A stretch of DNA of 64,000 nucleotides, taken from positions 3,348,001-3,412,000 of the forward strand of contig CDRNST010000104.1 of NCBI GenBank assembly GCA_977016875.1, read 5' to 3'. This DNA is from Pavona decussata. Lineage: Eukaryota. The notes beneath the pieces were generated by a model, which made no database searches, had not been told where the DNA came from, and saw only the letters and a program-made list of their open reading frames with translations. Positions 3,596 through 62,800 of this stretch are shown here, piece by piece. The position numbers and the translations under genes were made by a program. Position 1 is the stretch's first letter; every line of letters starts with the position of its first letter.

Positions 3596-4969
3596 TTTAT
3601 TGAAGCGTCAAAGTATTTAGTCCTGTGGACTAATCGGGGAGAAAAAAAAAAAAAAAACAACTCAGATAATAGATAAAACTATGTACAATCATGCTAAAAC
3701 TACCTTAAAAATTCGAAAACAAATTCATACATCCTATGGTGCAAGTATAAATCTATGCAGTTCTAAATTTACAACTATAAAATGAATAAAATTCAAGTGG
3801 AACAAAGGTTACAACAGTTATCGTTTTTGTTCAGGATTGCATCAAGTATCCGCAGATTTCTTTTAAAACTTTGTAGACTTGGTGACTCTCTAATATATAA
3901 CATCAATTCAGTCCATACGTATGGTCCCAAGAATCGTATTGAGTGTTTTCCGTAACAAACCGTGTTGTACTGCGGGATAATAAAATCAAAGTTCCTACGG
4001 AAATTGGTCACAGAACGCAACGATAGTGCTCCGGATGCCCTTTAAGTAGGCCCCTATCTACCTCGTGAGATCGAGAATTATTGCATCACTATAGTCAAGC
4101 AAATACTGTTGCAATTAGTCGCACACGTAATTTAGCTCAATTCATCTTAAATTGCTCGCCGCTGTTTAATAGCATCATTTTTTGTCAATACTGGGTATCT
4201 TGACATAAGCCTATTGACCGATTAGCTCTTTCGTAATCTTAAAGTCTACTGGGCTTTGAGATATGCTCAATTTAAATAAGTAATATTTCATACTCCTTTT
4301 ACAGATACCAAAAAGACAGCAGATGCCAACAAATGCACTTGCGAAATAGTAGCAGAAGACAACCAGAAGAAATATAAATGTGCAGAAAGATGCGACTGTT
4401 CCAAACAAGATTCCACAAAGTGTCAGAGTGACAAAAAGAGTTGTAATTGCAATCCAAGGAGTAAGACGGGAAAAGCTACCAAGTCGAGGGATTGCCAGTG
4501 CAAGAAAGCCGGAGAAAGGTCATGTGAGGATGGTAATATCAGCAATGCCACTAAGAAAAGCAACTGTCGATGCAGCCAACGTTCCAATGCACAACAAGCA
4601 GCGCTTGCACAAATGTCAGATGATCCGGGTATCTTAGCAGTCGCGCCACTGTCTCCGCAAGCAGCGGGCTGCCAGGGGATGCGAAAAGGAAAGGGCTCCA
4701 AGAAATGTTGCTGCTGCGACTGCTGCCATGATTGCTGCTGCCACGATTGTTGCTGCCACGATTGCTGCTGCCCTTGCTGCTGCTGCCACTGCTGCGAACC
4801 GTGTTGCTGCTGCTGCCACGAGTGCTGCTGCCCATGTTGTTGCCACTGCTGCCATTGCTGCCCTTGCTGCTGCCATTGCTGCTGTAAGAAATCGAAAGAT
4901 GCCCCTCTAAATCCTCAAGCGATCAACCCACTGATAGCTCAAGCTCAGGCCAAACCCCAGCATCACTGA
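2073..4969 (+). CDS. Secreted Cys/His-rich preproprotein (~286 aa); exons 2073-2160, 2770-2877, 4305-4969
   Basis: Exon 1 is MKATKFLCLFVFLTSVSLLVEAKSIQSQK (signal-peptide-like) followed by G|GTAAGT. Exon 2 is an acidic/charged spacer (TTGCAG| ... G|GTTAGT). Exon 3 (TTTTACAG|) encodes a CxC-repeat region, then KK-CCCCDCCHDCCCHDCCC...CCC-KKSK and is in frame with ORF 4613-4969. Both introns are phase 1. An N gap in intron 2 could hide an extra exon. Confidence 0.8.
3170..3307. other. Assembly gap (N run)
   Basis: Run of n characters. Confidence 1.
3513..3594. repeat. (TAA)n microsatellite, probably the 3' tail of the adjacent LINE fragment
   Basis: Perfect ATA/TAA repeat, next to a minus-strand AATAAA. 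Confidence 0.9.
3595..4020 (-). mobile_element. 5'-truncated non-LTR retrotransposon 3' end (CR1/L2-group-like ORF2 C-terminus)
   Basis: ORF 3793-4020 reads YGKHSIRFLGPYVWTEL...IRESPSLQSFKRNL, typical of the end of an RT ORF2, followed by a 3' UTR and simple-repeat tail. Confidence 0.7.
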
Positions 4970-7527: not shown

Positions 7528-8104
7528 ATGATGAGGACTACCGGTTTATTGGTAGTTTTCACGTTATTTGTCATCCTTCATCAAACGCCTGCAGTTCCTG
7601 TGGCATCCTCTTATAGATTAGAAAATGAAAATGTTATGGAAGTAACGGAAGCCAAGGACAAGAGCGACGAGGCCAGTGACGAGGAGAAGGAGGAAGATGA
7701 CAATGATAAGGAGGAGGAGAAAAACGAAGACACAGACGAAGAGAAAGAAGGAAAAGAGGATGAAGAGAAAAAGGACGATGAAGAATCTAAGGATGTTGAA
7801 GAAAATAAGGAGGATGAGGAGAGAAAAGACGACGAGGAGGCCAAGGATGACGAAGAGAAAAAGGACGATGAAGAAAGCAAGGACGATAAGGAGGAGGACG
7901 GGCAGGAACCTGACTTAAATGAGGAGCAAAATGATGAGTCTTCTGGCGAGGAAAGTGTTGATCTTGACTCTGATCACCTTGTACTTCAAGGAAGTGGTAG
8001 CGGCAAAATCAAAGGAGTCGTGATTGAAGACTCAGAGAAAGAGAAGGATAAGCCCGAGAAGCGATCAGTAGTTGATCAGAAGAAGCCTTCAAAGGCCACG
8101 CAAG
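7528..8104 (+). CDS. Leader exon: signal peptide plus Asp/Glu/Lys-rich prodomain (192 codons + 1 nt); candidate common 5' exon of the cassette array
   Basis: MMRTTGLLVVFTLFVILHQTPA is a hydrophobic signal, followed by DDEEKK-type acidic repeats. Ends CAA G|GTAATA (phase 1). Confidence 0.85.
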
Positions 8105-9115: not shown

Positions 9116-10716
9116 TCCGACAAAAACGTCAGTGTGGTTGTGGTTGCTGCTGCGGTGACCAGCCTGCGCCGGGGAACATCTGCGGTAATTGCTGTGGTGG
9201 CTTTGAGGCCCCCCAGGTTTGTGGAGGTTGTGGTTGCTGCCCATCGCTGAACTTCCCAGTCACGTTTGGAGCATGCGTACCAAATCCGTGCTGCTGTTGT
9301 TGCAAAGAAAAACCAGAAAAAGGCAAATGTCAGTGGCCTTGCATGTGGCCCTGTTGTTGTACATGCACCCCTCCTGTGTTTTCATTCAAGCCTATCGATC
9401 CTAAACCGATTGCCAAATGTCCTGCTTGTCATGGATGCTGCTGTGGATGTAAAAAGAAAAGCACAGGTTTGTAGATTATTTTGCTGTTATTGTTATTGCT
9501 ATGTCTTTGTCTGGTACTGTTGTATCGATTTGATGCGCAGCATAGGCGCATGCAGTATACCATCCTAAACTAACAATGATTATAGTCATTCGCTACAACG
9601 AGAGCTCAAACTTAAACCAAAAAAAATCAAAAATAATTTTGGTCAATACGGGAAAAAACCCACTTAATTGAGAGCGCAACGAACGACGGAGGTGTTTAAT
9701 ACAACCAAACTCCTGCGAATGTGGTGAAAACGTCTACCTTTCGCACTTTTGACCTAAAGAAAGCTGCGAAAACTAACGCGTCTAATTTAAACTTCGCAAA
9801 GTAACATAAGATGACGTAAATGGTTGAAATTAATCCGCTCACAGCACTCAAAATTTGTATAAGGTTTCGCCCTATGCACTGTGATGTGCACTGTGACGCT
9901 CTTTGAGCTATTTAAACTTTATACGATATAACAAAACAAATCTGTCAATTATATAACGGAGAGCAATGACAAAGATCCATATTAAAACCGAAATATATGT
10001 CCACCGCACGCAGTTATAAGAAAATTTAAGCTTTCTACTCATGACTAAATTCGTAAACGAAACGACTTTACTCACCAAGTTCTGATGTGCCTCGATTTAA
10101 ACTCTGGGAAGTCAACCGAAGTCTAGTTTAAAAGATTTGACAGTTTGTTTGTTTAGGGAATGACCAAGCTAGCGCAACGAAAAACGCGCGAAAAACGATA
10201 CGCATTCACCTTATTTAACGCATTACTTCTACAGCTGGTGAAAAAAACCGGATACTCGTAATTTGATTGGCTTACGCCACTTGATAACCTCTTTGAGGTT
10301 TAGATATCAATATCCCTAATTTGCAAGAGGAAGAAACAAACTGAAGATACCATCGTGAATTTGGCCAAACGGCAGACATTTTGACGTAGTCAAGGATTGT
10401 AAAGACATCAGAATGATCTCCTGATCAAATCACCTGTACATTTCGGTGTCTTCATTTATTTATGTACAAACACCATAGTTTACTGAATGTGATATAACTA
10501 ATCACAAGACTTATTCCTAACACCGCAGGTCCTTCCAAGAGAAATGCCATTGAAAAGCGTTGCGGATACGGCTGCGGTGACTGTGGTGGCTTTGGCTTTG
10601 GCTGTGGCTATGGCTTAGGCTATGGTTATGGACCTTATGGTGGATCCCCTTATGGTTATGGACCTTTTGGTGGATATGGAGGATACTTCCATGGTGGCCC
10701 TTTCCCATTTTACTAA
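9116..10716 (+). CDS. Cassette 1: Cys-rich WPCMWPCCC-domain exon 9116-9466 plus Gly/Tyr-rich terminal coding exon 10529-10716 (371 aa with leader)
   Basis: AACAG| (V)RQKR-QCGCGCCC...CGNCCGGF...FPVTFGACVPNPCCCCCKEKPEKGKCQWPCMWPCCCTCTPPVFSFKPIDPKP...KKKST G|GTTTGT, then CCGCAG| GPSKRNAIEKR-CGYGCGDCGGFGFG...GPFPFY*. Probable UTR exon from 11936 with AATAAA at 12239. Missed by the ORF track in this frame. Confidence 0.85.
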
Positions 10717-11426
10717 GTAAGTGCAAGACGAATATTCTTCTTACATTTCTGAACTTAGGCGGTAAATGTTTACTAAATGATAAAGACATAAGAATAGATA
10801 TGTTTTAGCTTCTTATTTCTGTCGCTCAAAACATAATTAAGGTAAAAAGAAACATTTTTTGAAAACATTTGAAATTCTACTACATTCTTGAAGATGATTC
10901 TCGTTTATAAATTACTTGCTCCAACACAGTATAAAACGCACGCCTGTTTTTGTGCGGCAAATGCCGAGAGCACTTACAAGTTTTCGGGCTTCAAAATCAG
11001 TTGCCTCTTATGAAGCGTGCTTAGCAGGAGTGCCAAAGAAGAAAAGAATTTCAGAGAATAATCACAAAGATCAGGCAAAAGTAGCGACTTTTAGTAAGCC
11101 TACAAATACAAAGGTGACTCAACAAGAAAAAGAGCAGAAGAAGACAGCGTAAAGAGATACAGTTTAAAGAAAATCGTTCTATTTCGTCTTTATCACTTTT
11201 CTTTTTTCTTTCATTCTTTTTTTTTTGTCAATTTGGCACCAGGTATTGCAAGCAGTCGTATTAAGGGGTTTAATTTATCACAAAAATTACGGTTCAGGAC
11301 TTTAAAAAAGGGGCGTTTCCTACATAAGCAAGATGGTTGGATAAGTTTTGGCGAAGATTTAGGTTAGAAAATAGGTTCTGTTTGGGTCACAGAAGAGTGG
11401 TGGCCATAACAAGGGTAGCTTTAATT

Positions 11427-11851
11427 CCGGGGGGGGGGGGTACTCCCTTATAAGAGGCTAATGGGGATGTGCCGATGGATGGGGTTGCACTTTCATGACT
11501 GGAATGACTAGAGTGGGGTTGCATTTTCAATAGAGTTACTAGAATGGGGTCGCACATTTTCGGATTTTTGGTGTAAGAAAATTCTATTAAGTAGGGATTC
11601 AAAATGGTCTCGGTTAAAAAGTTCAGAAAATTGTTGTTTATTAAATGTAACAATCACCTCTCATTACATTCCGTTCTTGAAAGGAGATGCATAAATAGAA
11701 AGTGACTTATTTGGGATCGCGAAAATTACATTTTCCCAAAAAGTGACTAAGATGGGGTCTACATCTGGCCACAAAATAGACTATAATGGGACAGGGGCTC
11801 TGAGAGGCCAGCGGCATATACCCAGCAAAACTGAACCCAAGTACCCCCCGG
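11427..11851. mobile_element. MITE with CCGGGG...GTAC / GTAC...CCCCGG termini and 9-bp TSD GCTTTAATT
   Basis: Short terminal inverted repeats; GCTTTAATT at 11418-11426 and again at 11852-11860. Confidence 0.8.
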
Positions 11852-13971
11852 GCTTTAATTGTAGCTCTTTCCAATTCCTAAACATTGCAGATCGATACAA
11901 CAGGTGTATTGACTTGTCTTTTGCTTTCCTTTCAGGTACCCGGTGACCCACTCAGTAGGTCAACTTGTGAAGAGTTGTTTGAGGCGCAAGCCTTGTTTCG
12001 CCGCTTTTGAGCACAAGACCTTGCATGGAAATGATTATGTTGTAAAAAAGATACAGATTGTAACAAAAAAATCGGTAAACATCGAAAAATATAAATAATC
12101 GTCCAAAGAAAAAGACAAAGACGTCTACATGAATCCGACGAAACTGCGCCTGCTAAAAAATCGTCTTCTTAAAAAGATTTTTCATCGCACAGAATTGCAA
12201 CTTTCGAACACTATAGATCTTCGGGCAACCTGTCAGTAAATAAAAGAAATCAACTTTGTGGTGTCTGTTATTCTCTTCCCATGAATTCAACTTCCTTATC
12301 TATCTAAATTAACTAATTAATGTCTTTTTCAGGAACGCTAAGCTGTTAGTTACTTTACCTTTTGTATGAACAATCCCCCAAGAATCCCACCCTTGATCCA
12401 ACTCTTTCATCAATGGTGACGATTTGTTCATTGCCGTCGGGTGATGAACCAGTGCGGTTCGCTGACAGAAAATCAATTAAGTTAAACGTTATAAGGAATA
12501 TTAAACGGGAAAAATGTACAAGGATATTCTTTTTTAAAGTTATTGTTTATCGGTGTCCATTTTTTTCTGCTGCCGTTTTTCGTTCACATTTACCATGATC
12601 ACGCACTTTCCCACTAAATATGAAATGGTGGTTTTGGCTTCTGGTTCTGGCTTCTGACATTATGAATTGAGGAAAAAAAAAAAAAGCATCGCCCAGAATG
12701 TCATTGTCTTTTGCGACATGCACTTACAGTGCTCGAGTTTTTGAGACACGGCATAATAATTTGCATAGTCAGAACTAGCTTACTGTGATTGGCCTGCAGA
12801 CTAAACAAGTTTTTCTACGACTTCGGTTAAAAACGCTTTTTAAAGCTAATCGGTTGTTAACGAGGTTCTTAGAAAGCAAGCATTACCTGCTAGTTTTGTT
12901 GCTGCTGTTGCAACGTTCTCTTTTTGCGAAGCGAAACTTACGACGAGCGCAAAGCGTTTATATAAGTACATTAAAACTGATGCTCACGCGTTGAAAATAA
13001 AATTATTGAACAGGTGTAATATTCGGTTTATTTTGTGTGTTGGCTTGGAATCAAAAACTCCAAAAAACTCCCTCTGACCACTGGACGGCAAAAAGATAGC
13101 TTAAAGATTTGACAGATCGTGGCAAACGAGAGCGAATGACAATTCAGTCGTGTTCCGATATTGGCAGAGGCGCTGTTGGTCAAGATTTTTCCCCTTCAAT
13201 TAACATTTCATTGTACAGTTAAGTGACAGGTCATTCACAAATCGGACAATGAAGACAGTAGGTGAAACTCAAAGCTAAAAGCTTTCAACTAACTTTTGGC
13301 TATGCTGTTTTCGCAAGAATCCAGTATTGAAAGTAAATTTAGTGGAAGATAATTGTATTTTGCTAAAAATGTACAAATATTGACTCAATTTACGAATTAC
13401 TGAATTTCGGATCCCATTCGGTAGTTTCAAATAAAATAAAAGCTGTTGAAAGCTGCCCTGCCTACGTTTAGTCAAAGCATATAGCGAGCAGTGTAAAATG
13501 TGCAAAATTTGTTGAATTACACTTACAAATTGTCGACGACGATCACCTGAAATATCACAGAAAGGTCGGTTATATTCCCATCTGAGACTGGTCACCTTTT
13601 TCTGCATAATAAGGGATCCAAGAATTGCAACCATTCCGTCCCAGCGAATGTCGGGGCACATCAAATACCGCTTACCCTGGTTTATGCTCGCTAGCTACTC
13701 TTCGTTTATGCTGGTGAGTATGTTGTTACGATCTGCCCTTTCACATTGCTTACAATTGATTTCACTTACTTTGGCAAAACCATAGACAGGGCAGCTTCGT
13801 CAACACCAACAATCCTATTTGCGCACTATATTCTAGCAAATCTGCCACACATTTGTAAGGCAGATAACGAAACTTTGGTAAAACGAAGCTGGCCTGTTTA
13901 TGTGACTCCGTTCTCCATTTCTTCCTTCCTACACGTTACATACAATAAGTCATTTATTCTTATGTTAACAG

Positions 13972-15477
13972 CCCGACGTTCTTGTTGTGGTTGCGGATGC
14001 TGTAACTGCTGCGGTGGCTTTGGATGCCCGGAATGTTGTCATCATTGCTGTGGAGGATGTTGTGGATGCGGTGGCTGCGACTCAATGACGTTTCCAGTCA
14101 CTTTTGGAGCATGCGTCGATAATCCATGTTGTCAGTGCTGTAAGAAGCCGCCAAAAAAAGGCTTTTGCCAGTGGCCCTGTATGTGGCCGTGCTGCTGCGA
14201 GTGCAAGGTTCCTCAGTTTAAATTGAAACCATTGAAGCCCAAAGCAGTCCCTAAGGAATGTCATGACTGTTGCCATGGCTGTGACTGTTGCCATGGCTGC
14301 GGCTGTTGCCATGGCTGCCACTGTTGCCATTGCTGCCACTGTTGCCCATGCTGCTGCCGAAAACGCACAGGTAGCAAATTAATACAGGACACGACATAAG
14401 TTGCCGCAGAAACTAGCAATTCTTCAAAAGTACCCTTGGTATAGCCAGAGTGGTTCAGCTATAGACTTTAAAAACCAAATATTAATTTTTACTTTGCAAA
14501 GTAACAAAGACAAGCAGCACATAAGATGAGCAGACTGCTTACTCATCAATATATCATCGATATCCGTGTACCGTTGTTTAGCAACCGATTAATGATGATC
14601 GATGATCTATCAGTAACATAGGTTTTATGAAAGTAACCGAATTTTAGTCGGTCACGGGTTCTAAAGAGATTTGACTGGAAATTTTAAGCCGCCATATGAA
14701 AGAAGAATGAAACCAAATTTCGAACTAAACATAACAAGAAATCATTTTGAAATAGATGCAAATAGTGGAAAAGATTAATCTTGCTTTGAACACTAAACCT
14801 TGTGCATACAATGATCCAGCTGTAACTTCATTGTAAAACTTTTCTTTTCTTAGGAAATTGCAAAAAGCGATGTCTTCTTCCACAAGCCATCGAAAGTATT
14901 CAGCCTTTTCCTTACGTGTACGGTCCTGTTGTACCCTTTTATTATGGAGTTCCATTCGTGCCGAACTACCCTTATTACTACGTCTGAAAAGAGTAAGTCA
15001 AGGGACCAAGCAGTAGGATTATAGGTTTAATTTTTACTTGGAATTTTAACAAACGAATTTCAATATCACAGAAAAGTTAACCTTTAACCACAATATGATG
15101 GCAACCTGTCTGGGAAAATGTATATGCAACTGTATGGCAATACAGTTGCAAATTTGATTGAATGGATGGTTGGCTTTTTTGTGGACTGATTGACTAGTCA
15201 ATAAATCGATTAACTGATTAATGGGTTGATTGATTGACTGATTAATGGCTAGAGTGCCGAGTGAGTGAGTGAGTGGGTGGGTGAGTTAGTGAGTGAGTGA
15301 GTGACTGACTGACTAATAAAATGATTGTTTGATCCTGGTAATACCTTTTCTGTAAAGGGTAATATCCAACTGTAATAACATAAAAACAACCAAAAATACT
15401 TTATTAACGTTAAGCAATTTAAAAGGTCATGATGATCGTTAATTTACTTTTTCCGTTTACTTGCAGGTCATCGTTGA
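13972..15477 (+). CDS. Cassette 2: Cys/His-rich WPCMWPCCC-domain exon 13972-14370 plus short terminal exon 15467-15477 (GHR*)
   Basis: TTAACAG| (A)RR-SCCGCGCCNCCGGF...FPVTFGACVDNPCCQCCKKPPKKGFCQWPCMWPCCCECKVPQFKLKPLKP...CHCCHCCHCCPCCC-RKRT G|GTAGCA, then TTGCAG|GT CAT CGT TGA; AATAAA at 15694. Confidence 0.75.
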
Positions 15478-16006
15478 AGACATATTGCTAATGTTGAAGT
15501 AGAACGCAGTTACAACAAATCATTTAGAGGAATACTGGACCCTTTAGAATAATGTTTAGATTGTTAAAATTGTAGATTTAAAATTAGTTAGGATAAAGAA
15601 ATTGATTATAGCATAGTTTTATTTGCCCCGAAGTAAAAGGTTTATTTTCGGTAAACATTTGCACCACTCGTACGAAAAGATATAAATTTCATGAATAAAA
15701 GAAATTTGAAAAGTATAATAAAGAAATATTTAGCGCTACAACTCATTGTTGTTTCACTTATTTAACATAAAGAGCAGCATTAAATGGCGTAATCTGCGTA
15801 ATCGTTTACGTTAAAAGCTTTCACCTAATTCCGTTCGTTTAAAATGTTCAGTTAATATAAGGCAAATGTTGCTGTGTAGTAAGCATTAAATGTCTGCCAA
15901 GTAAAAATGTGAGATTTCAAATATATTTCCATAAATTGTAACATATGTTTTATTGTTGTGCATCATTTTTGTACTATTTTGTTCTTTTTAACTTCTATTC
16001 TTATAG

Positions 16007-16903
16007 AGAAGCGATGCGGATGCGGCGGATGCGGTGGATGCGGAGATGCCTTCGACTCCGGCGGCTGTGACTACACGGGGGGCTGCGGTGGAGCATACGG
16101 AGGGGTTTACGGACCAGGAGGCGGATGCGGGGGATGTGGATGCGGAGGTGGATGTGGAGGAGGACCCAGCTGTTGTGGAACGAACGACTGGTGCGCTGCT
16201 GGTACGATGTGTTCCAACTGCAAGGGAGGATTCGGTCCCCCGATCACATGCTCCGGATGTAACACCGGCTGCTGCCCAAGTCTCACTTTCCCTTGCGCTT
16301 TTGGAGCCACTGTCAACAATCCCGGTTGTGAATGCTGCAAGGAGAAGACTCCCCCCGGGAAGTGCAAGTGGCCATGCATGTGGCCTTGCTGCTGCACCTG
16401 CACTCCACCCAAGTTTGAATTCAAACCTCTGAAGCCTGAGCCTGTTTGCCACTGCCCATCACCACACAGCCACCACACGGCCTGTGGACACCATTGTCTA
16501 AAAAGAACATGTATGTTATTGCTATTTTCCCGTTAAATTTATTCAAGTTAACAGAAAGAACTCACAGGTCTAGTATATATCTTTTACTGTATTCCAGGTT
16601 GAGATGTAAATTACTACGAAACTTACCTTAAGCTGGAACGAAAAGCGTAAAATAATCTAAGCACAGTATTACTGTTTAGATTTAATGAGGTCGAAACTTT
16701 GTTAGTGGGAAAAGTTCTCTTTTACTAATGGCTACCATTTCTTCTGTTTTTGTATATCAGCTAAGCAAGGCCCTGTGAAACGCAGTTTGATGGAGGAGCA
16801 GCTGTCTGTTTACATGCAAGCTCCCTACAGTTATGGCTATGCACAGGTCTACAACCCATTCTTTTATGGAGTTCCTATGATGCCTTTTCCAAGACGATTT
16901 TAA
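16007..16903 (+). CDS. Cassette 3: Gly/Cys-rich WPCMWPCCC-domain exon 16007-16510 plus Tyr/Pro-rich terminal coding exon 16761-16903
   Basis: TTATAG| (E)KR-CGCGGCGG...GTMCSNCKGGF...CKWPCMWPCCCTCTPPKFEFKPLKPEP...CLKRT T|GTATGT, then TATCAG| SKQGPVKRSLMEE...PYSYGYAQVYNPFFYGVPMMPFPRRF*. UTR intron 16918-17299; AATAAA at 17514. Confidence 0.85.
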
Positions 16904-18177
16904 ACGGATCAAAAAAGGTACTTCTTATGGCAAAGAATTCATTTGCGGTAAAATATCTAAATGTTGTTATTAATTTTCATCATAATTTCAGCTTGATTTG
17001 GCAAAAAAATTTCTCAGACTCAAACACAACGTAAATCCCTTTCTAGAATTAATCCACGTATTGGTAACTTCTACAGCTTGTCATGAAGGCCACATTTAAA
17101 AACTGAAATCAGTGAGAATATGTTCTATTGTTAAGAATCGTTTAGCGCTTTATGTAGCAATTGGGACTATTAAATTCAACTCACAATTATAATGGGCGTT
17201 TGATACCAATGTGGATGCCCATTGGAAATGTACTGGGGATACCTATACACATTGACTTTTCCTGTTCTGAAGGGCTTTTTTCTTTCATTATTCTTTCAGA
17301 TATCGCGGCTTCATAAAGTGGCATCAGTGTCCACAGATAACAAAAGCAACGCTTCAAATTAACCAGGAAATGTTCAACAAATGAAGAAAGAAGAAAGATT
17401 CATTGCTTTGCAAAACAGAACATTATATGCTTAGAAAGAAACAAAACCTTTTCAGAAACATCGCCATGTGTGGCGAATGATTGTTTACACAATTTTAATA
17501 ACAGAATTTGCTCAATAAATTGAACAGAGATTTAATACGATTTTTGTGTTCTTGTCATTTCCTAGATTTTCATCGCATCCGGTAAGGCAAACCAAGCCAC
17601 CCTTTTCTTCTTCTTTTCTTCTTCTTTTACTAAGTGGTATTGAGTTTTAATATTCTTACGTCAGGCTCCTTTAATGTTATGAGTAATTGACGTCCTGAAA
17701 TTTCTTTGTTAATTCTGTGACTCTTGTTCCTTTTACTGAACAAGTGATATCATTTCTATCCCTTGCATCTCTGTTTTTTTCTTTGTGTGTTTGCCAACTT
17801 GGCGGAAACACATAGCACTTCTAAACCACTCGATATAAATGCATGGAGTATTTCATTCAAAGACAGTGCGGCATTTGATGACAGCTACTAAGCAACATTT
17901 CTATTAAGGTATACTTACTTTTGGAGTTACTTTTACTTTTTTTTTCATCCTTTTATAACAAGTATTGGATGTTCACTTTTCAAATTTGTACTGTCTTTAT
18001 TTGATAAGAATTCACATGTTCACACTCACCTTTCTGTGGGGAAATTATTTACAACTCTCAGGATATCGCTAAAAGGCAAATATTACGGCTTTTTAGGTAC
18101 TTAACGTATTAGCGAGTTTGATTTTGGCTATCACTTAGAAGTCATTACCTATCTTATCATTTTTGCATTTTTTCCAG

Positions 18178-18781
18178 AGAAACGTCAATTCTGTGGAGGA
18201 TGTGACGGTGGATGTGGAGGGTGTTGCGGGCCGAATGACTGGTGTGCTGGCGGTACCATGTGCTCCAATTGCAAAGGAGGTTTCTACCCACCAGTGACCT
18301 GCGGAGGATGCAATACCGGATGCTGCCCTGGTATTACATTCCCTTGCGTCTTTGGTGCCAGTGTCAACAACCCCGCTTGCGAATGCTGCAAGGAGAAGAC
18401 TCCACCTGGACAATGCAAGTGGCCATGCATGTGGCCTTGCTGCTGCACCTGCACTCCACCCAAGTTTGAGTTCAAACCTCTGAAGCCTGAGCCTGTTTGC
18501 CACTGCCCATCACCACACAGCCACCACACGGCCTGTGGAAACCATTGTCTGAAAAGAACATGTAAGTCCTGGAAAACGTCTGTCCGTAAATTTTTGAAAA
18601 TGTTTTGCTCCATGAGGACGCCCTCTCGAGTTCCACACGAAACGACACTATACTTACAAGGGTCATATATACAGAATATGGTACGTTTTGGAACGCACTC
18701 CAATAGCCTTTCTGTTGTTTGGCATATAAACTGTTTGATCCAGTTAGAGAGAAGTGATCGAGTCTTCTTCCGTGAAATTAG

Positions 18782-18814
<33 letters not shown>

Positions 18815-19065
18815 CGATAACGAGACACGAAACGAAAAAAAGTTGTATGTTGGTGCATTTCTATTCACATCCCTGATTTCAAAGGTGGAAACATCAATAG
18901 ACTTCTTTCATTTGATCCACAGCTAGAAGCGGCCCAGTAAAGCGAAGCCTAATGAATGAAGGCCCTTCTACCTTTCTGCCGACGCCTTACAGTTATGGTT
19001 ACGCCCCAATTATCAGCCCATTCTACAATGGTGTCCCAAATGTGGTTTTCCCAAGACCGTATTAA
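18178..19065 (+). CDS. Cassette 4: WPCMWPCCC-domain exon 18178-18561 plus terminal coding exon 18923-19065
   Basis: TTCCAG| (E)KR-QFCGGCDGGCGGCCGPNDWCAGGTMCSNCKGGF...CLKRT T|GTAAGT, then CCACAG| SRSGPVKRSLMNE...PYSYGYAPIISPFYNGVPNVVFPRPY*. UTR intron 19086-19336; AATAAA at 19507. Confidence 0.85.
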
Positions 19066-20152
19066 GACGGAACTAATGTGTTGAGGTACTTAGAGTTACA
19101 AACCACTTAAAAAGTCTAAAACGTACGTTAGTCGGATATATACTCGTTAAATCACAGAGGTTTCGTTTAATTTTTTCGTAACGTAAGAACGATTTTGACA
19201 ATATTTATGCACGAGAAAAGTATCTTAATCATTTCATGTCATCATTTTGGAAGTGGAATAATCGTGTGTGAAATGAAATGAGATTGTATCAATGGAAAAT
19301 TGGTTTTGATTCCTTCTCTCTCGTTTTATTTTTCAGTTATATCTACCTCTAAAGAGTGAAACAAGAGTTATTTAGCGTACAAAAACTTCAGTAAGATCAT
19401 TCTACAAGACGCTAGGAGAGGATTTTCATTTCCAAGAAATGAAATTGCGTTTTCTTGTAACCTAAGAATATATATTTGTAATTTTAAAGTTTGATGACAA
19501 AAATTGAATAAATTGTTTAGAAATGATATTTGTTTGCGTCTCATTTTTATGATCGAGTAAATTATATTAAATTAATATGTACACCTATGGATTTGAATAA
19601 ATTGTTTAGAAATGATATTTGTTTGCGTCCCATTTTTATATCGGGTAAAACATAATTCATTAATATGCATATCCATGGATTTGACTTGCATTAGAGTCAT
19701 CAAGGACGAAGCAAACTCACCGGCACAATGTCATGGAACTACACACCATATTCACCAAGGTATCACGTGTCATTGTCATGTCATTGTTATCACTTCATTT
19801 AGCCACTAATCCACTTAGTCACTAATACATTAAACATTGTTCTGTGGAAACTGCAAGGCTAATCTCTTAGCATAACGTGGGTACTTTATCAAGCTAAATT
19901 GTAACTGGCTAAATATTCATGGTTACTTCAGTAATAACGTATGGTAAAATAACATAAATTTTGTCAAATCGAGTGGAATGATTTCTAAATAAAGTGATAA
20001 TTTACTTATTCGTACTTAAGCTGAGCAGTTTCAAATAATAACTTGTAAACTTAACGTTAAATAACCCACAAATTGTTGTTTTATATAAAATCATAGCAAA
20101 GCTTAAAAAGTTATACGTGCGTTGTTCACCTTTTTCGTTCTTATCTTCGCAG

Positions 20153-23100
20153 CTAAACGACATTGGGGTGTCGGACACGGCTACGGCCTTGGCGGATTTG
20201 GCGGCTTTGGTGGATGTGGTGGATTTGGCGGGTGTGGTTGTTGTGGCTGCGCAGAAGGTACCATGTGCTCAAACTGCTGTGGTGGTTTCGGTCCTCCAGT
20301 TGGCTGCGGATGCGGTGGTGGTTGCGGCCTTTCATTTCCGTGCACGTTTGGCGCTTGCGTGAACAATCCTTGCTGTGAATGCTGCAAAGAGAAGCCACCG
20401 AAAGGAATGTGCCAGTGGCCATGCATGTGGCCCTGCTGCTGCCAGTGTAAACCTCCCGAGTTTAAGTTCAAGCCCCTGGAACCCAAACCTGTATGTCATG
20501 GTCATCATCACTGTCATCGCAGATCACGCAGCCACAAGAAATCGAGTAGGTCATTTTTATTTTAGATGATTGATTACTGTAGTGTATGTTAAAGTTAACT
20601 CATGGACATCCTACTCAGAGTTAGTCCTGAAAAGGAAACGGGAGAACGCACGAGGCAGAAAAAACAATTTTCGACTTCGGCGAGAATGGAGCCAATGACC
20701 TCGGGATGAGAGCAAGTCGCGGGTGATAATGATAGTAACTGCGGCAAATGTAAAAGTGAAAGATGCAAATTATTTTTTGTATTTTAACGTACACTACTGA
20801 GTCAATTCTCTGATCCATCATTTGTGTCATTGATGCAATTTTGGGTCTAGTTAAATTGACTTAGTCCCTTATTGCAATAGCAATCAGCTGCCTAAGCTTC
20901 GAACAAATGCTGGACGTAAAATAAACACCGTCATTTCCAATAAGATCAGAAGGCGATTGTTCCGAATTACGCCTTTCTGTACTGTCATTTTATTTCCCGA
21001 TCTGGCCCAGCGTTTATCCGGGGTCCGGCGTTTGTTTGAGAGTAATCTACGCTGTGATGTTTTTGAAATTCCTTTCCTTCCAGTAACAGATTTGCAACAT
21101 GTTTAGCAAAAACCGACGGCTGTGATTTAACTCCAGTCTTACAATGCGCAACAAGTATATAATATCTTCTTAAGTATATGAATTATGACTACATTTTTTT
21201 TTACCTTGTGGTTTAACTAATTTTGTGGTATTATTTCGTCTTGTTACACAGAGCAAGAAGGTCCTGTCAAACGCACTATGATGAAAGCTTTCAAGGAAAG
21301 TTCGTTTCCAGCCGACTATCCTCAATTCACAACATTCCAAGGTGGCAACGTTCCATTCAATGGACCACAATATCCAGGTGGGCCTGTTCCATTCGGTGGA
21401 AGCTTTTTCCCCAGAGCTAACTCTCCATTCATTGGCCGTCCATTTCCAGTTGGCCCTTCTCTGTTTCCAGCCGGAATGCCTCCACTTGAAGCCCGCTCCT
21501 TACCAATGAGTGGCCCTATATTCAGTGAACGTTCGTTCCCAGGTGCCAAATTTAAATCTGATGACAGTTCGCTCCCAGGCGCTAATTCTCCGTTTGATAG
21601 CCGTTCGTTCCCAGCTGGACCACCCTCCCCTTTCCTTGGACCTTTGTTTCCGGGAAGCCCATCTCCATTCAGTGCAGCTTTATTTCCAGGTGGCAATTCT
21701 CCATTCCCGAGAGCAGCTTATCCTACATTTACCTTTCCTACTGTGAACAGTTTTCCCTTGAAGCCTCAAGCTATTCTTCACGTTCCTGCGAAGAAGTCAA
21801 TACCTTCGGGTGCTCAGGTATGTCAGCCAGGATGTTCTATTTTGTGTCAATCGACGTAAAACATAACATCTTATTACTCAACATAATTCGATGTTTGGCC
21901 TTTATTTCTACCATCATCACAAAACTGAATGAAACGAAAGTAAATGGAAATATTGTACATTCCACAAGCTTAAAAGAAAGCAGCGCAAAATCGGAACGTC
22001 GGTTATGAACAAGACCTATGAACAGAATTAATGGAGAAACGACGCTGAATTGAGAAGTTGCGCAAAATACCAATGCAATGTTATTGCTCTTTGTAAGGTA
22101 ATTCGAGAGCGACTTAGATTCAGGATTCCACGCTTTGGATACCAGATTCCAATGACTCGATACCGATTTCCACGTTGGTGGATTCCGGGTTCCAAAAGAG
22201 GCTGGATTTTAGATGTTAGGCTCTATCTTTAAGCGCTTTGTATTGCATTTTTCCAGATATTACAGGAAGAGACTTCAGTAGTGGTTCTTTGTATTAAGTA
22301 ACGCTTCGCGTAAGAACTATGGTGGAGAACAATAGGCCGCGGCAACGAGAGCCGTTTTTCTCCCGTGTTGAACTAAGGTGTTATAATCTCCAAATGAGCT
22401 TTCTCATTCGGTAAAACGCTATTTGGCGCGAAATTCAAATGATTTGAAGAAAATTTTTTATGTTGGAACCCGAGCAATTCGCTGAATTTCGCATATTGCA
22501 TTTACATTCTAATAATCTTTGCATAGCCGAAAAGGAATAGAAATCGTATGTGGGGAAATGCGTGTTTGGTTGATGACGGCCCGGAGAGTGGTATTTTTAC
22601 CTTTCTTTCGTCAAAATTTTGACAGATTTATAAATAATTTACAGTAAAGTTATGCAATCCAGTGTTTACTTGTTCAGGATACAATCACCAGATATGAAAT
22701 GTTTCATAGCATTTTTGTAATTTATTTTCTTCTCTATAGTTATTCCAAATGATTTTTGCTCGCCAGACGTTATTATTATTTTCTTTATTCATTGTCGACT
22801 GAATATCGCCGGCTAACGGAGATCAAAATAACTTCCAGAATGGCGTATTTACCGCCTCAACACTTTCTGAATATGAAGAAAGTTTTCGGCAAACAACCAT
22901 ATACGAGTGGTCTCGTAACGTCCAACATCTCTAAATATTACGACTATAACCGAAAATTTTCATATTTTGCGTCAATGAAATCAACAGCAACCCCGAGGGA
23001 TTCTCTAAGTCTAAGAAAGTGCTTGACGCGCACAGGCCGACGCAAGCGGCAATCACGGACTCTCAACAGCCAACGAAACCAAAAAAAAATTACAACATCC

Positions 23101-25058
23101 GTAAACAGGCAATATTGAATGAGTCAGTTAAAGCTGTAGCAACAACCGCGACTACAAAAGCAGATCCTCATACAGTTCCTCTTCAAAAGCTGACAACACG
23201 GACAGTGCGTTGCATTCATCTTCTGTTTACAAGTCTAGTGTACCACTTGAAACGGAGTGAACCGTCTTCGTAAAGGTGGATTTCCACTGTCGCGTAAATT
23301 TTACGTGCGTACAGACGTGAATTTAGCTGGCTTTACGTACGTAAATGGAATAAGAAGCGATATATGAGCCGCGTGCGTAAACGTAAAAAGTTGAACAGCA
23401 CTCAACTTTTTACGTTTACGCACGCGGCTCATACATCGCTTCTTATTTTATTTACGTACGTAAAGCCAGCTAAATTCACGCCTGTACGCACGCAAAATTT
23501 ACGCGACAGAGGAACAACAATTCGTCTGCAGAAAATCTATATCCATGTGCCACAATAGTTCGTACATTTTCATATGAGCACAAACAAGCTACCGCCAAAA
23601 TCGTAATCTTCTCGCAATTACCTGAAATGTTCGCATATTCCAGTCGACTGAGGGCGTTTTTTCCGTGAAAAATGGTGCTCTGATCAAGAAACGCACAATT
23701 GGAGATGTCTAAGTATTCCAAATCACTGGCTTTGTTGACGATTTGCAGACGATTTGCAGAAGCTGTTGTGGACCGCGCTTGCCGACTTCAATTCGATCGA
23801 CGACCCGCGTATATCGCCAAATCCCCACTCCGAATGAAAAGGACAGCAGCATACAGCCGCAAAAAGGCATAATACACTAAGAGATGATCAATTTCAGAAA
23901 AGATGGACAATTACAAGAAAATAATGACTCAGGAGAACTCTTCTTTTTCGCGTCACAGCAACAATCAAAGATGGCGGAAGATCACTGAACGTTCTTGACG
24001 GACCGTAACCATGGTTCCCCACATGCGATTCTCTTAAAATTTTCGTGACACATAGAACAATAGTTATATTCCATATATGGAACATTGAAAGGGAATTTTT
24101 GAATATTTTACTGCCATTTTTTAACATTTTTTTATTTCTAGCCAATCACAAGGCTAGATTTTAATTAGTTAATTGGAAACAGACAACCGGTTAATTCACG
24201 CTGTGTTGCCGATTTTTCTATAGTTCTTACGCGAAGCGTTACTTAAAAGGGAGTTGTGCCAAAAATTGAATGTGTTTCCATGGATGTGTGCAGGTTTTTG
24301 GTTTCTCCTATAATAAGAAATTCATTCAGGGATAAAATGAGACTTTGGCTTATCTTTGAGGTATAAAAGAGAGATGCGCTTTTTTAAGCTGCAAAAAGAA
24401 GGCAGTAGCTGACAGAACTGCACCACGAAAAGTCGTCAACAGATCAGCTATTGCGACTTAATAAAATTAATGATAATAAAAAAAGAGTTTAAAGAGTGGA
24501 AGAGAGCCTGGAAAATGGTCAGAAATGCGTGTAGTTTTTGTATACTAATTATCCTCGCGATGCGGTTGTGTCATCCAACACAATAGTTTTCACACCGGAT
24601 GTGTCGATATTTCCCAGGGCAGGTTGAACGAAAGAAACGTGTGTGAGGTCGCCAGCTCGGAACAGCGGCTTTCGGGAAGCTACGGAAAGGGTGAAGAACC
24701 ATTGTTACAAGAAGTGGATTACAGCAATGTTGACTCTGACTCCAATCGTTGGATTCTGGTTTCCAAGAGCTTGATACCTGATCCTATAACCCTGAATTCC
24801 GGAATGTAGATTACCCTACATAGTGGAATTATGAAATTAGACCCGACCGGACGTCTACTTATTACTTTATTTAATATTTTATTTTGCTTGATTGTATTTA
24901 AGGTTTCTATAAGAGTACAAACTGGTGCTGACTCGGAGAAAAGAACCCCAACTGATGAAATGGAGAAGCAAGAAGAAGAAAATGGAGATCAAGAACAAAA
25001 ACCAGAACAGGAACAAGAACAAGAAGCCGGAGAAGAAGAAGAGGAAAAGCAAGAATGA
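20153..25058 (+). CDS. Cassette 5: WPCMWPCCC-domain exon 20153-20545, Phe/Pro/Gly-rich exon 21252-21817, acidic terminal exon 24903-25058
   Basis: TCGCAG| (A)KR-HWGVGHGYGLGG...CQWPCMWPCCCQCKPPEFKFKPLEPKP...HKKS A|GTAGGT; ACACAG| KQEGPVKRTMMK...(FPGGxSPF repeats)...SGAQ|GTATGT; TTTAAG| VSIRVQTGADSEKRT...EEEEKQE*; AATAAA at 25253. An unspliced stop at 21859 is an alternative end. Confidence 0.8.
22298..24242. mobile_element. Non-autonomous DNA transposon with ~23-bp TIR (GTAACGCTTCGCGTAAGAACTAT), flanked by TTAA (or TA)
   Basis: TTAA-GTAACGCTTCGCGTAAGAACTAT at ~22294-22320 and ATAGTTCTTACGCGAAGCGTTAC-TTAA at ~24220-24246. The duplicated copy has the empty site GTATTGAAAGGGAG at 31682. Confidence 0.85.
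23282..23514. mobile_element. Near-perfect palindromic (fold-back) MITE nested in the TTAA element
   Basis: Arms of ~110 bp (TTCCACTGTCGCGTAAATTTT...AAAAGTTGA / TCAACTTTT...AAAATTTACGCGACAGAGGAA) around a ~7-nt loop. Confidence 0.85.
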
Positions 25059-25574
25059 AGATATATTTTGACGATTCTAGCTGGTGCCGCCTTTAACTGT
25101 AATCCTCCAATCTCTGTCGAAAGTGAAGGAGGAGAGATCAATGCTTACTTCCAGATCACGTTTCGTTAATGCAAGAGGGACATTTTTCTATGATACCCAC
25201 TCATGTATTTGTTCATTTTTGGAATTATTTACCTTCTGTAAGAAAAGAATGAAATAAACTTCTCTAGAGCCGTAGTGACAAGAAATTTGAAAAGCATAAT
25301 AAAGAAATATTTAGCGCTACAACTCATTGTTGTTTCACTTATTTAACATAAAGAGCATCATTAAATGGCGTAATCTACGTAATCTTTTACGTTAAAAGCT
25401 TTCACCTAATTCCGTTCATTTAATGTAAGACAACTGTTGCTGTGTAGTAAGCATTAAATGTCTGCAAAGTAAAAATGTCAGATTTTAAATATATTTTAAT
25501 AAATTGTAACATATGTTTTATTGTTGTGTATCATTTTTGTACTATTTTGTCCTTTTTAACTTCTATTCTTACAG

Positions 25575-59857: not shown

Positions 59858-62800
59858 CTAGTCAGTCAGTCAGTCAGTCAGTCAGCCATTCAGTCAGCGC
59901 ACTGATTCAAAATATATTAACACTTTCCCTTTAAGACCAAAGACGGAAGTCTGTGAAAGATATATTGTTGGACAGGCTCCTTTCCTCTTCCTCTTCAGCA
60001 ACAAAACTTTACTTAAAACTTTGTACTAACTGCATCACGGCAATACCATTTTAATGTTAGGAGATTAATGTAATTATGTTTGCAATGCATTTTAATTAAT
60101 ACGTGAAAAGTTCAATTAAGTTTTATTTTTATCTTAAAGATGACCAAAGATGATAGTTCTATAACACTACCTCCCATTCCACCAAATCCGTATCCAAGAC
60201 GGTAGTTGTCTCCGCTAGCATATCCATATCCTAGATGAATAGTTTGCTTTTTGCTTTGCGCATTATCTTCTGCTCCAGGTATCTCTTCACGGGTGTTCGG
60301 CTTAACATCTTTACTTTTCCGTGGAACGCCTGTTCGGGCATACCAAAATGGGTATCCATAACCAAACCCATATCCCGGATATCCCAAACCTAAGCCGTAA
60401 CCCCCAAGTCCGAAGCCGCCATGACCCCAACCACCAAGGTATCCTCCATATCCGAATCCAGGGTAACCACCACCAAATCCGCAGCCACCACAACCCCCAC
60501 AACCCCCACAGCCCCCACAACCTCCACAACCTCCAAAGCCAATTCCGCATCGCTTGGATGTTTTTCCTGTGACCCCTGGTTGATCTTGAGATGCTGACGC
60601 TACTGGAGCTGACTGTCCAGGTTTCGCAACAGCAGGAGCATGAGGAGCAGCGGCAGCGACACTAACAGCTGGAGCAGGACCAGGCTTCACAGATAATGGT
60701 TCAGCCTCCTTTGCAGATTTCCCACCAGCAGCACTATCAGAAGAGCCAGGTTGTTGGGAGCCCACATTAGATTTACAACATCCTGCATTGAAGAAAGTCC
60801 ATGGACCATTGAAAGCTGGTCCTCCACCGTAGCCCAAACCACAACCTCCACAACCGCCACCATAACCTCCTAATGCCCCACAGCCTCCGCATCCACCATA
60901 GCCTCCCCAGCCTCCACCATAGCCTCCCCAAGGTAGGCCACATCCACCCCAGTTCCAGTCACCAATTCCACATCCTAGGTCTCCGAATCCTCCACATCCT
61001 CCAAATCCTCCACATCCCCCATATCCCCCACAACCATCCCAGAATCCGCAGCGTTTACTCGCCCTCTCTTCTTTCTTGCCAGCACCAGGAGTTGATTTGC
61101 CATCTTGAGCAGACTGAGGACTATCGTTAGGTTTATCTGATTGTTTTTGTTGACCTTTTTCATTTTTGGCCAACTTAGATCTGAACAAACAACAGCCACC
61201 CCCACATCCCCCACAACCACCTCCACATCCCCCACAACCACCTCCACATCCCCCACAGCCACCTCCACATCCTCCACAACCACCGCAGCCACAACCTCCA
61301 TAACCATGTCCCCCCCATGCTCCATGCCCGAATCCCAAACTAGCAATGCCGCAATCACCACAGCATCCTCCGTGACCACATCCGCCACCACACCCACAAC
61401 CGCCACATCCTCCACAACCACCAAACCAGTCGCAGTGTCCCAAATCACCATACCAGTCTCCATGACAACCACATCCACCGTGACCGTACCATCCCCCGCC
61501 ACAGCCGCAGCCACCGTAGCCACCGCAACCACCGCAACCACCGCAACCACCGCAACCACCACAACCACATCCACAGCCACCGCATCGTTTAGTTTGCTTC
61601 TTGCTTCCGTTTTGAGCACTCCTCTTAGCCTTATTTTCCTTAGAAATCTTTGACTTTCCACAGCCTGAGGCACAACCGCAACAGCCGCCCATTGAAGTGC
61701 ATCCACAGTCAGTTGGCGTAAGGAGCTGTTTTCAACAAAATAAAGGCAATATCAAGTCACGAGAATAAATGTAGGAAAGCCTTTAAGGGCACTTAACACA
61801 AAAAATGTTCAGACTCGTCAATACCTTTAACCCGATATGATTACTCTGTTCTTAACTTTACGCATGGTTTGATAACCATTCCTAATGTCAGAATTTACAA
61901 AACAAAAATCAAAAGTCAATTCTCACAGAATCCACTCGGGTCTTCTTAAAACCTCTCAACACGCTGCTAGATAAAGAAAAGTAACTATTCAGGATAAAAG
62001 ATATTATTGAGCAAAGAGAAACTGCTCTTTACGTAGTTTCGTGTTGCAAAAAAAATCTTCTATGCCATATATTTAAACGGATAGTAATACAGCAATCTAG
62101 AGATCCGTTCAAACCAGTTCAAGAAGCACAAAAGTAGCACCAAAACCAGTAAACATCGGGTTTTCGAATTTGTATTTAGGAAATGTTTCATAAAGTAAAC
62201 GATCTTTAGTTTTGTAACGAGCCGGATATCTCACCACCTGGACTTTTCACCCTCGTGACAACCTTTACTGTTATGCATATATATCTTTTTTGCAAATGTA
62301 TTCCACGAGTTGTCGTGGATATGGAATGATTCGGTGACAGAGGGATTGAAAAAAAAAAAAAAAAAAAGCAGACACGTGTATACATTGGCTTCCATACGCT
62401 CATCAACGATCGCTCAGTTTTCTTGAAAAAGGACTGGTTATCAGTGATAATATGGAGCAAAACTCATCCTCATCATCCTACATTTTGCTTATCTTCTCAG
62501 GCTAACAGTATAAAAACACCCAAGGAGGAAAAGCGCGAAACTTGAAATTTTGTGCGATATAAATTACCTAAATATATCTATAACAAAACATCTATAACAA
62601 AACAAAACAAAACAGCGCGAGAAAATAAAATACGTTTCGGCAGCTTTCATTTGAATTGTTAGATCAACACTCTAAAAGGGTTTAGAGTGGAATGGAAGAA
62701 AGGGCTAAAAGTGTATTACAAACAGAACGATTGGCTTTATTTCATCTCTTATTTTCAGGTTTTGCTGTCAGTTAGGCAGGTAGTACCCGCAACTTAAGCG

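Follow-up and report, generated by a model that had tools for sequence, protein, structure and literature searches.

The locus and its exons

This account concerns a 64,000-nucleotide stretch of the genome of the coral Pavona decussata (positions 3,348,001 to 3,412,000 of contig CDRNST010000104.1, assembly GCA_977016875.1), which we call the window and in which all coordinates below are given. Within it lies one gene made of a single 5' leader exon followed by an array of mutually exclusive 3'-terminal cassettes, each with a Cys-rich exon containing a domain whose core reads WPCMWPCCC. A first-pass annotation, made by a model from the letters alone, had pointed to five diverged Cys-rich exons between 9116 and 20545 that share a long consensus and whose introns cannot be aligned, and this observation is confirmed: position 9116 is the true first base of the first Cys exon, and the consensus, written as a regular expression, matches all six intact exons. 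In a six-frame scan the pattern WPC.WPCC occurs at eight sites, all on the + strand, with W codons at 9334, 14172, 16369, 18420 and 20416 (Cys exons C1 to C5, the five seen before) and at 25925, 27927 and 29802 (C6 to C8, discussed further below). In self-BLASTN the pairwise alignments among C1 to C5 are confined to 153-379 bp of exon at 68-84% identity, while the introns do not align with one another, the exception being a recent block duplication. The earlier interpretation as a whole is partly supported, as will become clear.

Since a profile of the 79-80-aa core finds only eight places in the whole assembly (602,225,754 bases searched, 11 candidates scored, E 1.7e-40 to 2.0e-30), all of them in the window, the family is confined to a single locus. 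The exon limits that follow were checked against splice sites and RNA joints; exons were searched singly rather than as a joined spliced model, and junction codons were read by eye.

Leader exon, 7528..8104, + strand: open reading frame (ORF) with ATG, signal peptide and acidic pro-region; GT donor at 8105, phase 1.
Cassette 1 Cys exon (C1), 9116..9466, + strand: phase 1-1, starts xRQKR, ends KKKST.
Cassette 1 tail (T1), 10529..10716, + strand: GPSKRNAIEKR, then a Gly/Tyr/Cys-rich peptide ending PFPFY and a stop; placed by tblastn with acceptor and stop.
Cassette 2 Cys exon (C2), 13972..14370, + strand: phase 1-1, starts xRR, ends RKRT.
Cassette 2 tail (T2), 14854..14987, + strand: GNCKKR, then a Pro/Tyr-rich peptide ending YPYYYV and a stop; placed by tblastn with acceptor and stop.
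Cassette 3 Cys exon (C3), 16007..16510, + strand: starts xKR, ends LKRT; RNA joints.
Cassette 3 tail (T3), 16761..16915, + strand: xKQGPVKR, then SLMEEQ...PFPRRF; stop ends at 16903; RNA joints.
Cassette 3 untranslated (3'UTR) exon, 17298..17530 (3' end approximate), + strand: entered by the joint 16915->17298; AATAAA at 17514.
Cassette 4 Cys exon (C4), 18178..18561, + strand: starts xKR, ends LKRT; RNA joints.
Cassette 4 tail (T4), 18923..19083, + strand: xRSGPVKR, then SLMNEG...FPRPY; stop ends at 19065; RNA joints.
Cassette 4 3'UTR exon, 19335..19600 (3' end approximate), + strand: entered by the joint 19083->19335; ATTAAA at 19566, AATAAA at 19596.
Cassette 5 Cys exon (C5), 20153..20545, + strand: starts xKR, ends HKKS; N-terminal part rich in Gly, Phe and Tyr.
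Cassette 5 tail (T5), 21252..21859, + strand: xQEGPVKR, then about 195 aa of Pro/Phe/Gly/Ser-rich repeats and a stop.

The leader opens with a signal peptide (judged by eye; MMRTTGLLVVFTLFVILHQTPA) and goes on to a pro-region of about 165 aa that is rich in Glu, Asp and Lys and carries a net charge of -44, before its coding part ends ...EKRSVVDQKKPSKATQ and then G|GTAAT in phase 1. It is single-copy in the genome (one match at E 4e-104, with two others at E 0.048 and 0.58) and its identity with the Acropora muricata isoform X3 leader is 63.5%. Every Cys exon has a polypyrimidine-AG acceptor two bases ahead of a codon and a GT donor one base into a codon, so all of them are phase 1-1, and each comprises a Gly/Cys-rich stretch and the WPCMWPCCC core of about 80 aa between a starting x[KR]R and a closing K[RK][ST]. 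The tail exons follow 250-1060 bp downstream of their respective Cys exons, have a phase-1 acceptor, open with GPVKR, GPSKR..EKR or CKKR, and continue as a Pro/Tyr/Phe-rich or Gly/Tyr-rich peptide to a stop codon, which is present in all eight tail exons, duplicates included. Cassettes 3 and 4 each have, in addition, an intron in the 3'UTR, 12 and 18 nt past the stop (16916-17297 and 19084-19334).

One leader joined to alternative endings

Our RNA evidence comes from Logan contigs of four runs over 15900-21899, a stretch that lies beyond C1 and C2, and such contigs show the presence of a joint rather than its absence. RNA is the recorded type of runs X9 and X11; for X1 and X2 that type is a guess, in favour of which their GT..AG joints argue. 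These joints, all GT..AG, connect C3 to T3 (16510->16761, runs X1 and X2), T3 to its 3'UTR exon (16915->17298, X2), C4 to T4 (18561->18923, X1) and T4 to its 3'UTR exon (19083->19335, X1, with another contig ending at 19589). Contigs that begin at the acceptor of C3 (X1) or of C4 (X1 and X2, starting at 18176) each carry 24-28 loose letters ahead of the exon, and these letters are window 8079-8102, the 24 bases before the terminal AG of the leader and unique in the window. The leader is therefore spliced directly to C3 or, separately, to C4, so that transcripts with the same 5' exon differ in their 3' cassette. As the leader donor is joined to one cassette per transcript, a single promoter would give at least five different secreted precursors.

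The first-pass annotation had implied that the exons are successive parts of one protein, and it is here that it fails. A chained, multi-domain polyprotein, cut at KR sites into several modules, would be allowed by the uniform phase 1-1 of the Cys exons and would suit their bracketing by basic sites, and one Desmophyllum ab initio model (P0059) does chain two cassettes and so has two domains. However, the leader joins C3 and C4 directly, with the upstream cassettes skipped, the joints from C3 to T3 and from C4 to T4 lead into tails that bear stops, none of the five joints listed for the four runs over the stretch connects one Cys exon to another, 20 of 21 database matches have one domain, and the RefSeq models are isoforms. 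We rejected the polyprotein accordingly, as already largely refuted and very improbable.

Much the same can be said of the idea that every cassette is a small gene in its own right, with an unrecognised promoter and first exon, and that the leader junctions are minor read-through products. Each cassette does have its own stop, a 3'UTR exon with a separate poly(A) signal belongs to C3 and likewise to C4 (RNA ends cannot be read from contigs), and a C5-like cassette in Pocillopora P0009 stands behind a different 5' end. But there is a single leader in the genome, every Cys exon begins in phase 1 at an acceptor and has no in-frame ATG with signal peptide of its own, and the leader is the only upstream sequence found ahead of contigs that start at the C3 or C4 acceptor. 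This explanation was likewise rejected, and we would give it hardly any chance.

Several points do weigh against a single leader serving the whole array. Leader splicing is seen in this genome for C3 and C4, with C1 and C2 beyond the stretch examined; RNA coverage of C5 consists of one unspliced X2 contig (20138-20593), and a leader-to-C5 joint is not seen in the four runs over 15900-21899. Rare chained transcripts would be compatible with data made of contigs only. The deviating layouts of P0059 and P0009 are probably prediction artefacts.

A few further contigs should be described here. For T5 there is an X1 contig of 582 bases whose start, at 21252, coincides exactly with that of the exon, and it has no joint. 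X1 and X2 contigs leave the reference at 16120, in the Gly/Cys part of C3, with 78-111 unlike letters ahead, and an X1 contig leaves it at 20515, inside C5 where there is no GT, with 255 unlike letters after; allelic differences in length, a mixture of paralogues or chimeric assembly may lie behind these departures.

The arrangement has familiar counterparts. In CALCA-type genes, common 5' exons for the signal and pro-region are joined to alternative 3'-terminal exons with their own poly(A) sites, giving different mature peptides, and the coral gene resembles them in its one signal/pro-region leader, in its mutually exclusive 3' cassettes with their own stops and dibasic sites, and in the separate poly(A) signals of the C3 and C4 cassettes. 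It differs in offering at least five choices (eight with duplicates), all of them paralogous and of one domain family, and in yielding Cys-rich modules of 110-165 aa rather than short hormones. Genes of the Drosophila lola/mod(mdg4) type have constant 5' exons and tandem alternative 3' exons for paralogous domains; here the likeness lies in paralogous cassettes in tandem, joined singly to a common 5' part, and in growth by local duplication. Unlike the coral products, which are secreted, those of lola and mod(mdg4) are BTB proteins of the nucleus that end in a zinc-finger or FLYWCH domain and are made partly by trans-splicing, a process not needed in the coral, where all parts lie on one strand in order.

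Relatives and conservation

A protein profile search of 1.84 billion representatives (E<=0.001) matched 21 proteins, 20 of which, 130-344 aa long, have exactly one full-length domain. The remaining match, P0021 (1617 aa, 14 partial stretches, E 5e-6), was rejected as a member, being a different Cys-repeat protein. Named members come from four species of Acropora and from Montipora, Porites, Pocillopora, Desmophyllum, Nematostella and Actinia, which is to say from Scleractinia and Actiniaria only. They are labelled 'uncharacterized', 'hypothetical' or 'unnamed protein product', or else bear names driven by composition, such as 'keratin-associated protein 5-5-like' in Actinia and the automatic RefSeq name 'sarcoplasmic reticulum histidine-rich calcium-binding protein-like'.

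RefSeq lists isoforms for relatives in Acropora, Montipora, Pocillopora and Nematostella, and these gene models are therefore already public. Pocillopora verrucosa isoforms X4 and X2 are identical over 196 aa and then split, both at the exon junction ...STQ|, into a C2-like or a C3-like cassette with the matching tail; the Acropora and Montipora models consist of leader, C4-like exon and tail; Porites lobata protein P0060 has leader, C1-like exon and Gly/Tyr tail. Nematostella isoforms X5 and X3 have 246 residues in common and then differ, and, judged by these predicted isoforms, the layout of leader plus alternative ending is shown in the sea anemone too. Of the tails, T1 is 60% identical to the P0060 tail (E 3e-26, tblastn), T2 61-62% identical to the tails of P0016, P0018 and P0033 (E 1e-18 to 3e-20, tblastn), T3 69% identical to the Pocillopora X2 tail and T4 79% identical to that of Montipora, and the C-terminal part of T5 is similar to the tails of P0009 from Pocillopora and P0059 from Desmophyllum. 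In length the cassette 5 tails stand apart, for T5 and its duplicate T8 run to about 200 aa of FP..SPF-type repeats, compared with about 55 aa in P0009 and P0059, and this tail has thus expanded in this lineage.

In a tree of the core, cassette types cluster across species. C2 groups with Pocillopora isoform X4 (support 100/99), C4 with Montipora (95/89) and C1 with Porites (88/82), and C3 and C4 form a group together at 97/97. Such clustering means that the cassettes are old paralogues with orthologues in other coral families. The core is very well conserved, with identities to other families of 98% (C3 to Pocillopora), 96% (C4 to Montipora) and 95% (C2 to P0018), and an alignment of 27 sequences has 22 invariant columns and 16 that are almost invariant, with W, F, P, G and most Cys among them. 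Estimates of dN/dS on the core (Nei-Gojobori) are 0.082 for C3-C4, 0.061 for C3-C6 (8 synonymous and 2 non-synonymous differences), 0.078 for C4-C6 and 0.083 for C4-C5, and range from 0.061 to 0.129 for pairs whose dS is unsaturated; for the older cassette pairs dS is saturated and dN is only 0.19-0.39. The WPCMWPCCC domain is under strong purifying selection. The first-pass annotation had argued for a selected domain and had proposed dN/dS as a check, and with values of 0.06-0.13, not near 1, it was right on this point.

A domain outside the described families

That the domain was uncharacterised had been a judgement by eye, and it has held up in searches. Pfam returns no family at E<=10 for any of the five Cys exons, and nothing above threshold for the leader, T5, four full-length homologues or three neighbouring ORFs; the only listing, TMEM208 (E 0.08, 13.2 bits against a cut-off of 22.9), was taken as chance. 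A profile search of PDB gives no match at E<=1, and literature searches by motif strings and by member accession and LOC ids found no paper describing the domain or the architecture. On the strength of these searches, the WPCMWPCCC domain belongs to no described family.

Two of the families compared here, minicollagen/NOWA and metallothionein, had already been set aside in the first-pass annotation. The minicollagen/NOWA Cys-rich domain (CRD) pattern, CxxxCxxxCxxxCxxxCC, is found in none of the six intact exons; it does occur in 5 of 62 fetched WPCCC proteins, which we take to be chance in Cys-rich sequence. No Gly-X-Y run is present in the translated exons or full-length homologues, and Pfam collagen does not match them. 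The coral proteins resemble minicollagens and NOWA in being cnidarian-restricted, secreted and Cys-rich, with a basic-ended pro-peptide, and minicollagens and NOWA are thought to polymerise via disulfides; they differ in having a domain of about 80 aa with about 20 Cys and invariant W, F and P, in lacking a collagen triplet region, and in that the named members of the coral family are hexacoral only. With keratin-associated proteins and metallothioneins there is a likeness of composition, namely very high Cys and Gly content with CC and CxC runs, but the coral protein sits behind a signal peptide and pro-region, and neither the metallothionein nor the keratin high-sulfur families of Pfam match (at E<=10 for the five exons). 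Metallothioneins are cytosolic and have few aromatics, unlike a protein with a signal-peptide leader and with W, F and P invariant in 27 sequences. The best look-alike in the ESM Atlas, a 'keratin-associated protein 16-1-like' cluster at 0.76, falls below the 0.9 threshold for a lead. SCRiPs (about 40-50 aa with 8 Cys) and galaxins (di-Cys tandem repeats) are also taxonomically restricted, secreted, Cys-rich coral proteins, from which the present family would differ, as neither is known to have the WPCMWPCCC core.

Growth and decay of the array

Downstream of cassette 5 the array continues in a block duplication of about 6.6 kb, in which 15699-22295 aligns with 25280-31686 at 91-95% identity (self-BLASTN); C6 to C8 are, as judged from this alignment, a recent block duplicate of C3 to C5.

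Duplicate cassette 6 Cys exon (C6), 25575..26066, + strand: intact copy of C3 without 12 bases of the Gly/Cys part.
Duplicate tail T6, 26325..26467, + strand: intact; differs from T3 by one linker residue (K to N) and one tail residue (L to P).
Duplicate cassette 7 Cys exon (C7), 27688..28068, + strand: C4 copy interrupted by an in-frame TGA (27810-27812); acceptor CAG now GAG.
Duplicate tail T7, 28409..28551, + strand: peptide identical to that of T4.
Duplicate cassette 8 Cys exon (C8), 29539..29931, + strand: copy of C5 with an in-frame TGA at 29661-29663.
Duplicate tail T8, 30636..31249, + strand: copy of T5.

The recent duplication thus gave three cassettes, one intact and two broken, and by its sequence C7 is probably a dead exon. 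C5 and the broken C8 differ by 1 synonymous and 6 non-synonymous changes, which fits decay. Over 15900-16390 the contigs of X9 and X11 continue across the acceptor and are short of the 12 bases that C6 also lacks, and we read them as probably unspliced C6-type sequence. A direct repeat of about 0.9 kb, 88% identical, lies at 24386-25280 and 32556-33405, so placed that the first copy directly borders the beginning of the duplicated block and the second follows about 0.9 kb after the block ends; each copy contains a short ORF with a Glu/Gln-rich stretch, and the repeat may have taken part in the duplication as a mobile or recombination-prone element.

Processing and possible role

What, then, might such a protein be for? 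The signal peptide and the conserved dibasic borders, present in the homologues and in the exons of the window alike, are those of a secreted precursor, and in all ten full-length homologues the first Cys is preceded by a [KR]R at a distance of 13 residues or less, and one or more dibasic sites follow the core. Because dibasic sites bracket every part, processing by a convertase is likely. A furin- or prohormone-convertase-type protease would cut at x[KR]R before the Cys part, at K[RK][ST] after it and at GPVKR or KKR at the tail start, to release an acidic pro-region, a basic Cys-rich module of about 110-165 aa and an aromatic tail of about 40 aa or more. The modules have 25-46 Cys in 116-167 aa (19-35% Cys, with odd counts in C3 and C5; in C2, 46 of the 132 aa are Cys, and a run rich in Cys and His stands at the C-terminus), a pI of 7.9-8.6 and a net charge of +3 to +9. 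From this composition we infer a structural, cross-linking role, in keeping with one of the options of the first-pass annotation, and the minicollagen/NOWA analogy supplies the functional basis: the module would most plausibly be a building block that cross-links through disulfides, and perhaps through metal too, within an insoluble hexacoral-specific material, secreted or intravesicular, with the wall or tubule matrix of the cnidocyst as the leading candidate, while the acidic pro-region would keep the module soluble or sorted until delivery. One leader, alternative cassettes and convertase-processed cross-linking modules together make the explanation we favour, at somewhat better than even odds.

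Some weak hints speak for such a function. In PMC10212133 a set of 109 co-expressed genes, enriched for 'collagen' and 'extracellular region', has the Acropora digitifera orthologue LOC107332322 as its hub gene; the ORFs around the gene also encode secreted proteins rich in Gly/Cys or Gly/Ala, and all named members come from hexacorals. Several points stand against it. AlphaFold2 on the C4 exon, with an alignment of 27 rows, gives no confident fold (mean pLDDT 45.2, pTM 0.24), only the WPCMWPCCC hairpin reaching pLDDT of about 70, and that the domain is folded, as the first-pass annotation held, is on this modelling unproven. The restriction to hexacorals, with no member in octocorals or medusozoans, is the outcome of one profile search in which most matches carry no taxon label. 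The authors of PMC10212133 read the collagen-enriched module as wound healing; to see in that module a signal of cnidogenesis, via minicollagens, is speculation. Literature searches by accession and LOC id, which did not extend to supplements, found no cell-type or proteome entry linked to the gene, and four items of the cnidocyte literature (PMC12549020, 10.1101/2025.10.06.680633, 10.64898/2026.06.23.733813 and 10.64898/2026.06.16.732747) do not tie to it in the portions available to us, supplements again aside.

The same features could be those of secreted bioactive peptides, antimicrobial or toxin-like, in which an anionic pro-piece neutralises a cationic Cys-rich product and the array serves as a repertoire. 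A signal peptide, acidic pro-region, KR sites and basic Cys-rich product of pI 7.9-8.6 would be expected of such a system, as would several diversified cassettes in tandem. Defence and venom peptides, however, are fast-evolving, and a core that is 95-98% identical between coral families at dN/dS of 0.06-0.13 is unlike them; 25-46 Cys in 116-167 aa with Gly-rich low-complexity parts, odd Cys counts and no predicted compact fold do not suggest a toxin either, the charges are unbalanced (-44 for the pro-region against +3 to +9 for the module), and no Pfam toxin or defensin family matches. PMC10212133 adds, in favour of bioactive peptides, that the module of the Acropora orthologue correlates positively with disease-exposed corals. 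On balance we think a role of this kind unlikely.

Alternatively, the Cys/His module may be chiefly an extracellular binder of metal or mineral, for hardening, storage or a biomineralisation matrix, with the acidic leader as a calcium binder. The CC, CCC and CxC runs would suit this, as would the repeats of Cys and His that occur in C2 and towards the C-terminus of C3 to C5, and the acidic leader is probably what lies behind the calcium-binding name given by RefSeq. Yet Nematostella and Actinia, anemones that do not calcify, have members of the family too, a signal peptide together with invariant Trp, Phe and Pro is unlike metallothioneins, for which Pfam offers no family at E<=10, and no fetched member has a skeletal-matrix name, a weak point in that proteome tables in supplements were not covered. 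Metal or mineral binding as the chief function is, in our opinion, a quite unlikely answer.

The neighbourhood

Neighbouring ORFs also encode secreted proteins rich in Gly/Cys or Gly/Ala, and the following features of the window lie outside the gene itself.

4613-4969, + strand, upstream of the leader: ORF of CCH/CCC repeats (…CCCCDCCHDCCCHDCCCHDCCCPCCCCHCC…), like the Cys/His extension that ends C2; no Pfam match.
35455-35858 against 39682-39288: inverted repeat of 404 bp, 96% identical, with arms about 3.4 kb apart.
41819-42484, + strand: 221-aa ORF; it contains a signal-like segment, internal in position, a spacer rich in Ser and Lys, and a short Cys patch ending ...CKVKYTPPKFKMKPLKSKTKC...GRRKR.
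43656-46304, + strand: 882-aa ORF that runs from a signal-like N-terminus through an acidic spacer and a Cys patch (…MMPPCCPCCC…) into Gly/Ala repeats of about 550 aa; no Pfam match.
60112-61692, - strand: 526-aa ORF with Gly/Cys/Tyr/Trp blocks, Lys/Ser-rich spacers and KR sites.

The TPPKFxxKPLK motif of the 221-aa ORF echoes the C-terminal part of the WPCMWPCCC domain, and this ORF may be a degenerate relative of the domain; hhalign against the domain profile gives it a probability of 33% over 18 columns, and the 882-aa ORF also 33% (18-22 columns across the two). The 882-aa ORF accounts for the peak at 44-46 kb in GC (0.595) and GC-skew (0.57), and its product could be a silk- or elastomer-like secreted protein. 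The blocks of the 526-aa ORF resemble the Gly/Tyr tail T1 (tblastn, 55% identity). The inverted repeat could be the terminal repeats of a transposon.

What the gene may mean for hexacorals

Spirocysts are cnidae confined to Hexacorallia, and this raises the unlikely idea that the gene is a 'material-choice switch', in which each cnidocyte or secretory cell type would pick one 3' cassette and so draw at least five cross-linkable blocks from a single promoter. The WPCMWPCCC module would then be the hexacoral-specific matrix of spirocysts or of particular parts of nematocysts, and the Gly/Cys- and Gly/Ala-rich neighbours would belong to a cluster of genes for cnidocyst material.

Whatever its role proves to be, an undescribed protein domain has been defined that is nearly invariant across stony-coral families and is also found in sea anemones, which implies an important function specific to hexacorals. 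The layout in which it comes, a single leader with many alternative endings, is an unusual and ancient one for a secreted protein, and the growth and decay of the array are ongoing and visible in this genome. If it holds for all cassettes that each has its own stop and 3'UTR exon, then 3'-end single-cell RNA sequencing could resolve which cassette is used in each cell type, and the question of function would become directly testable.

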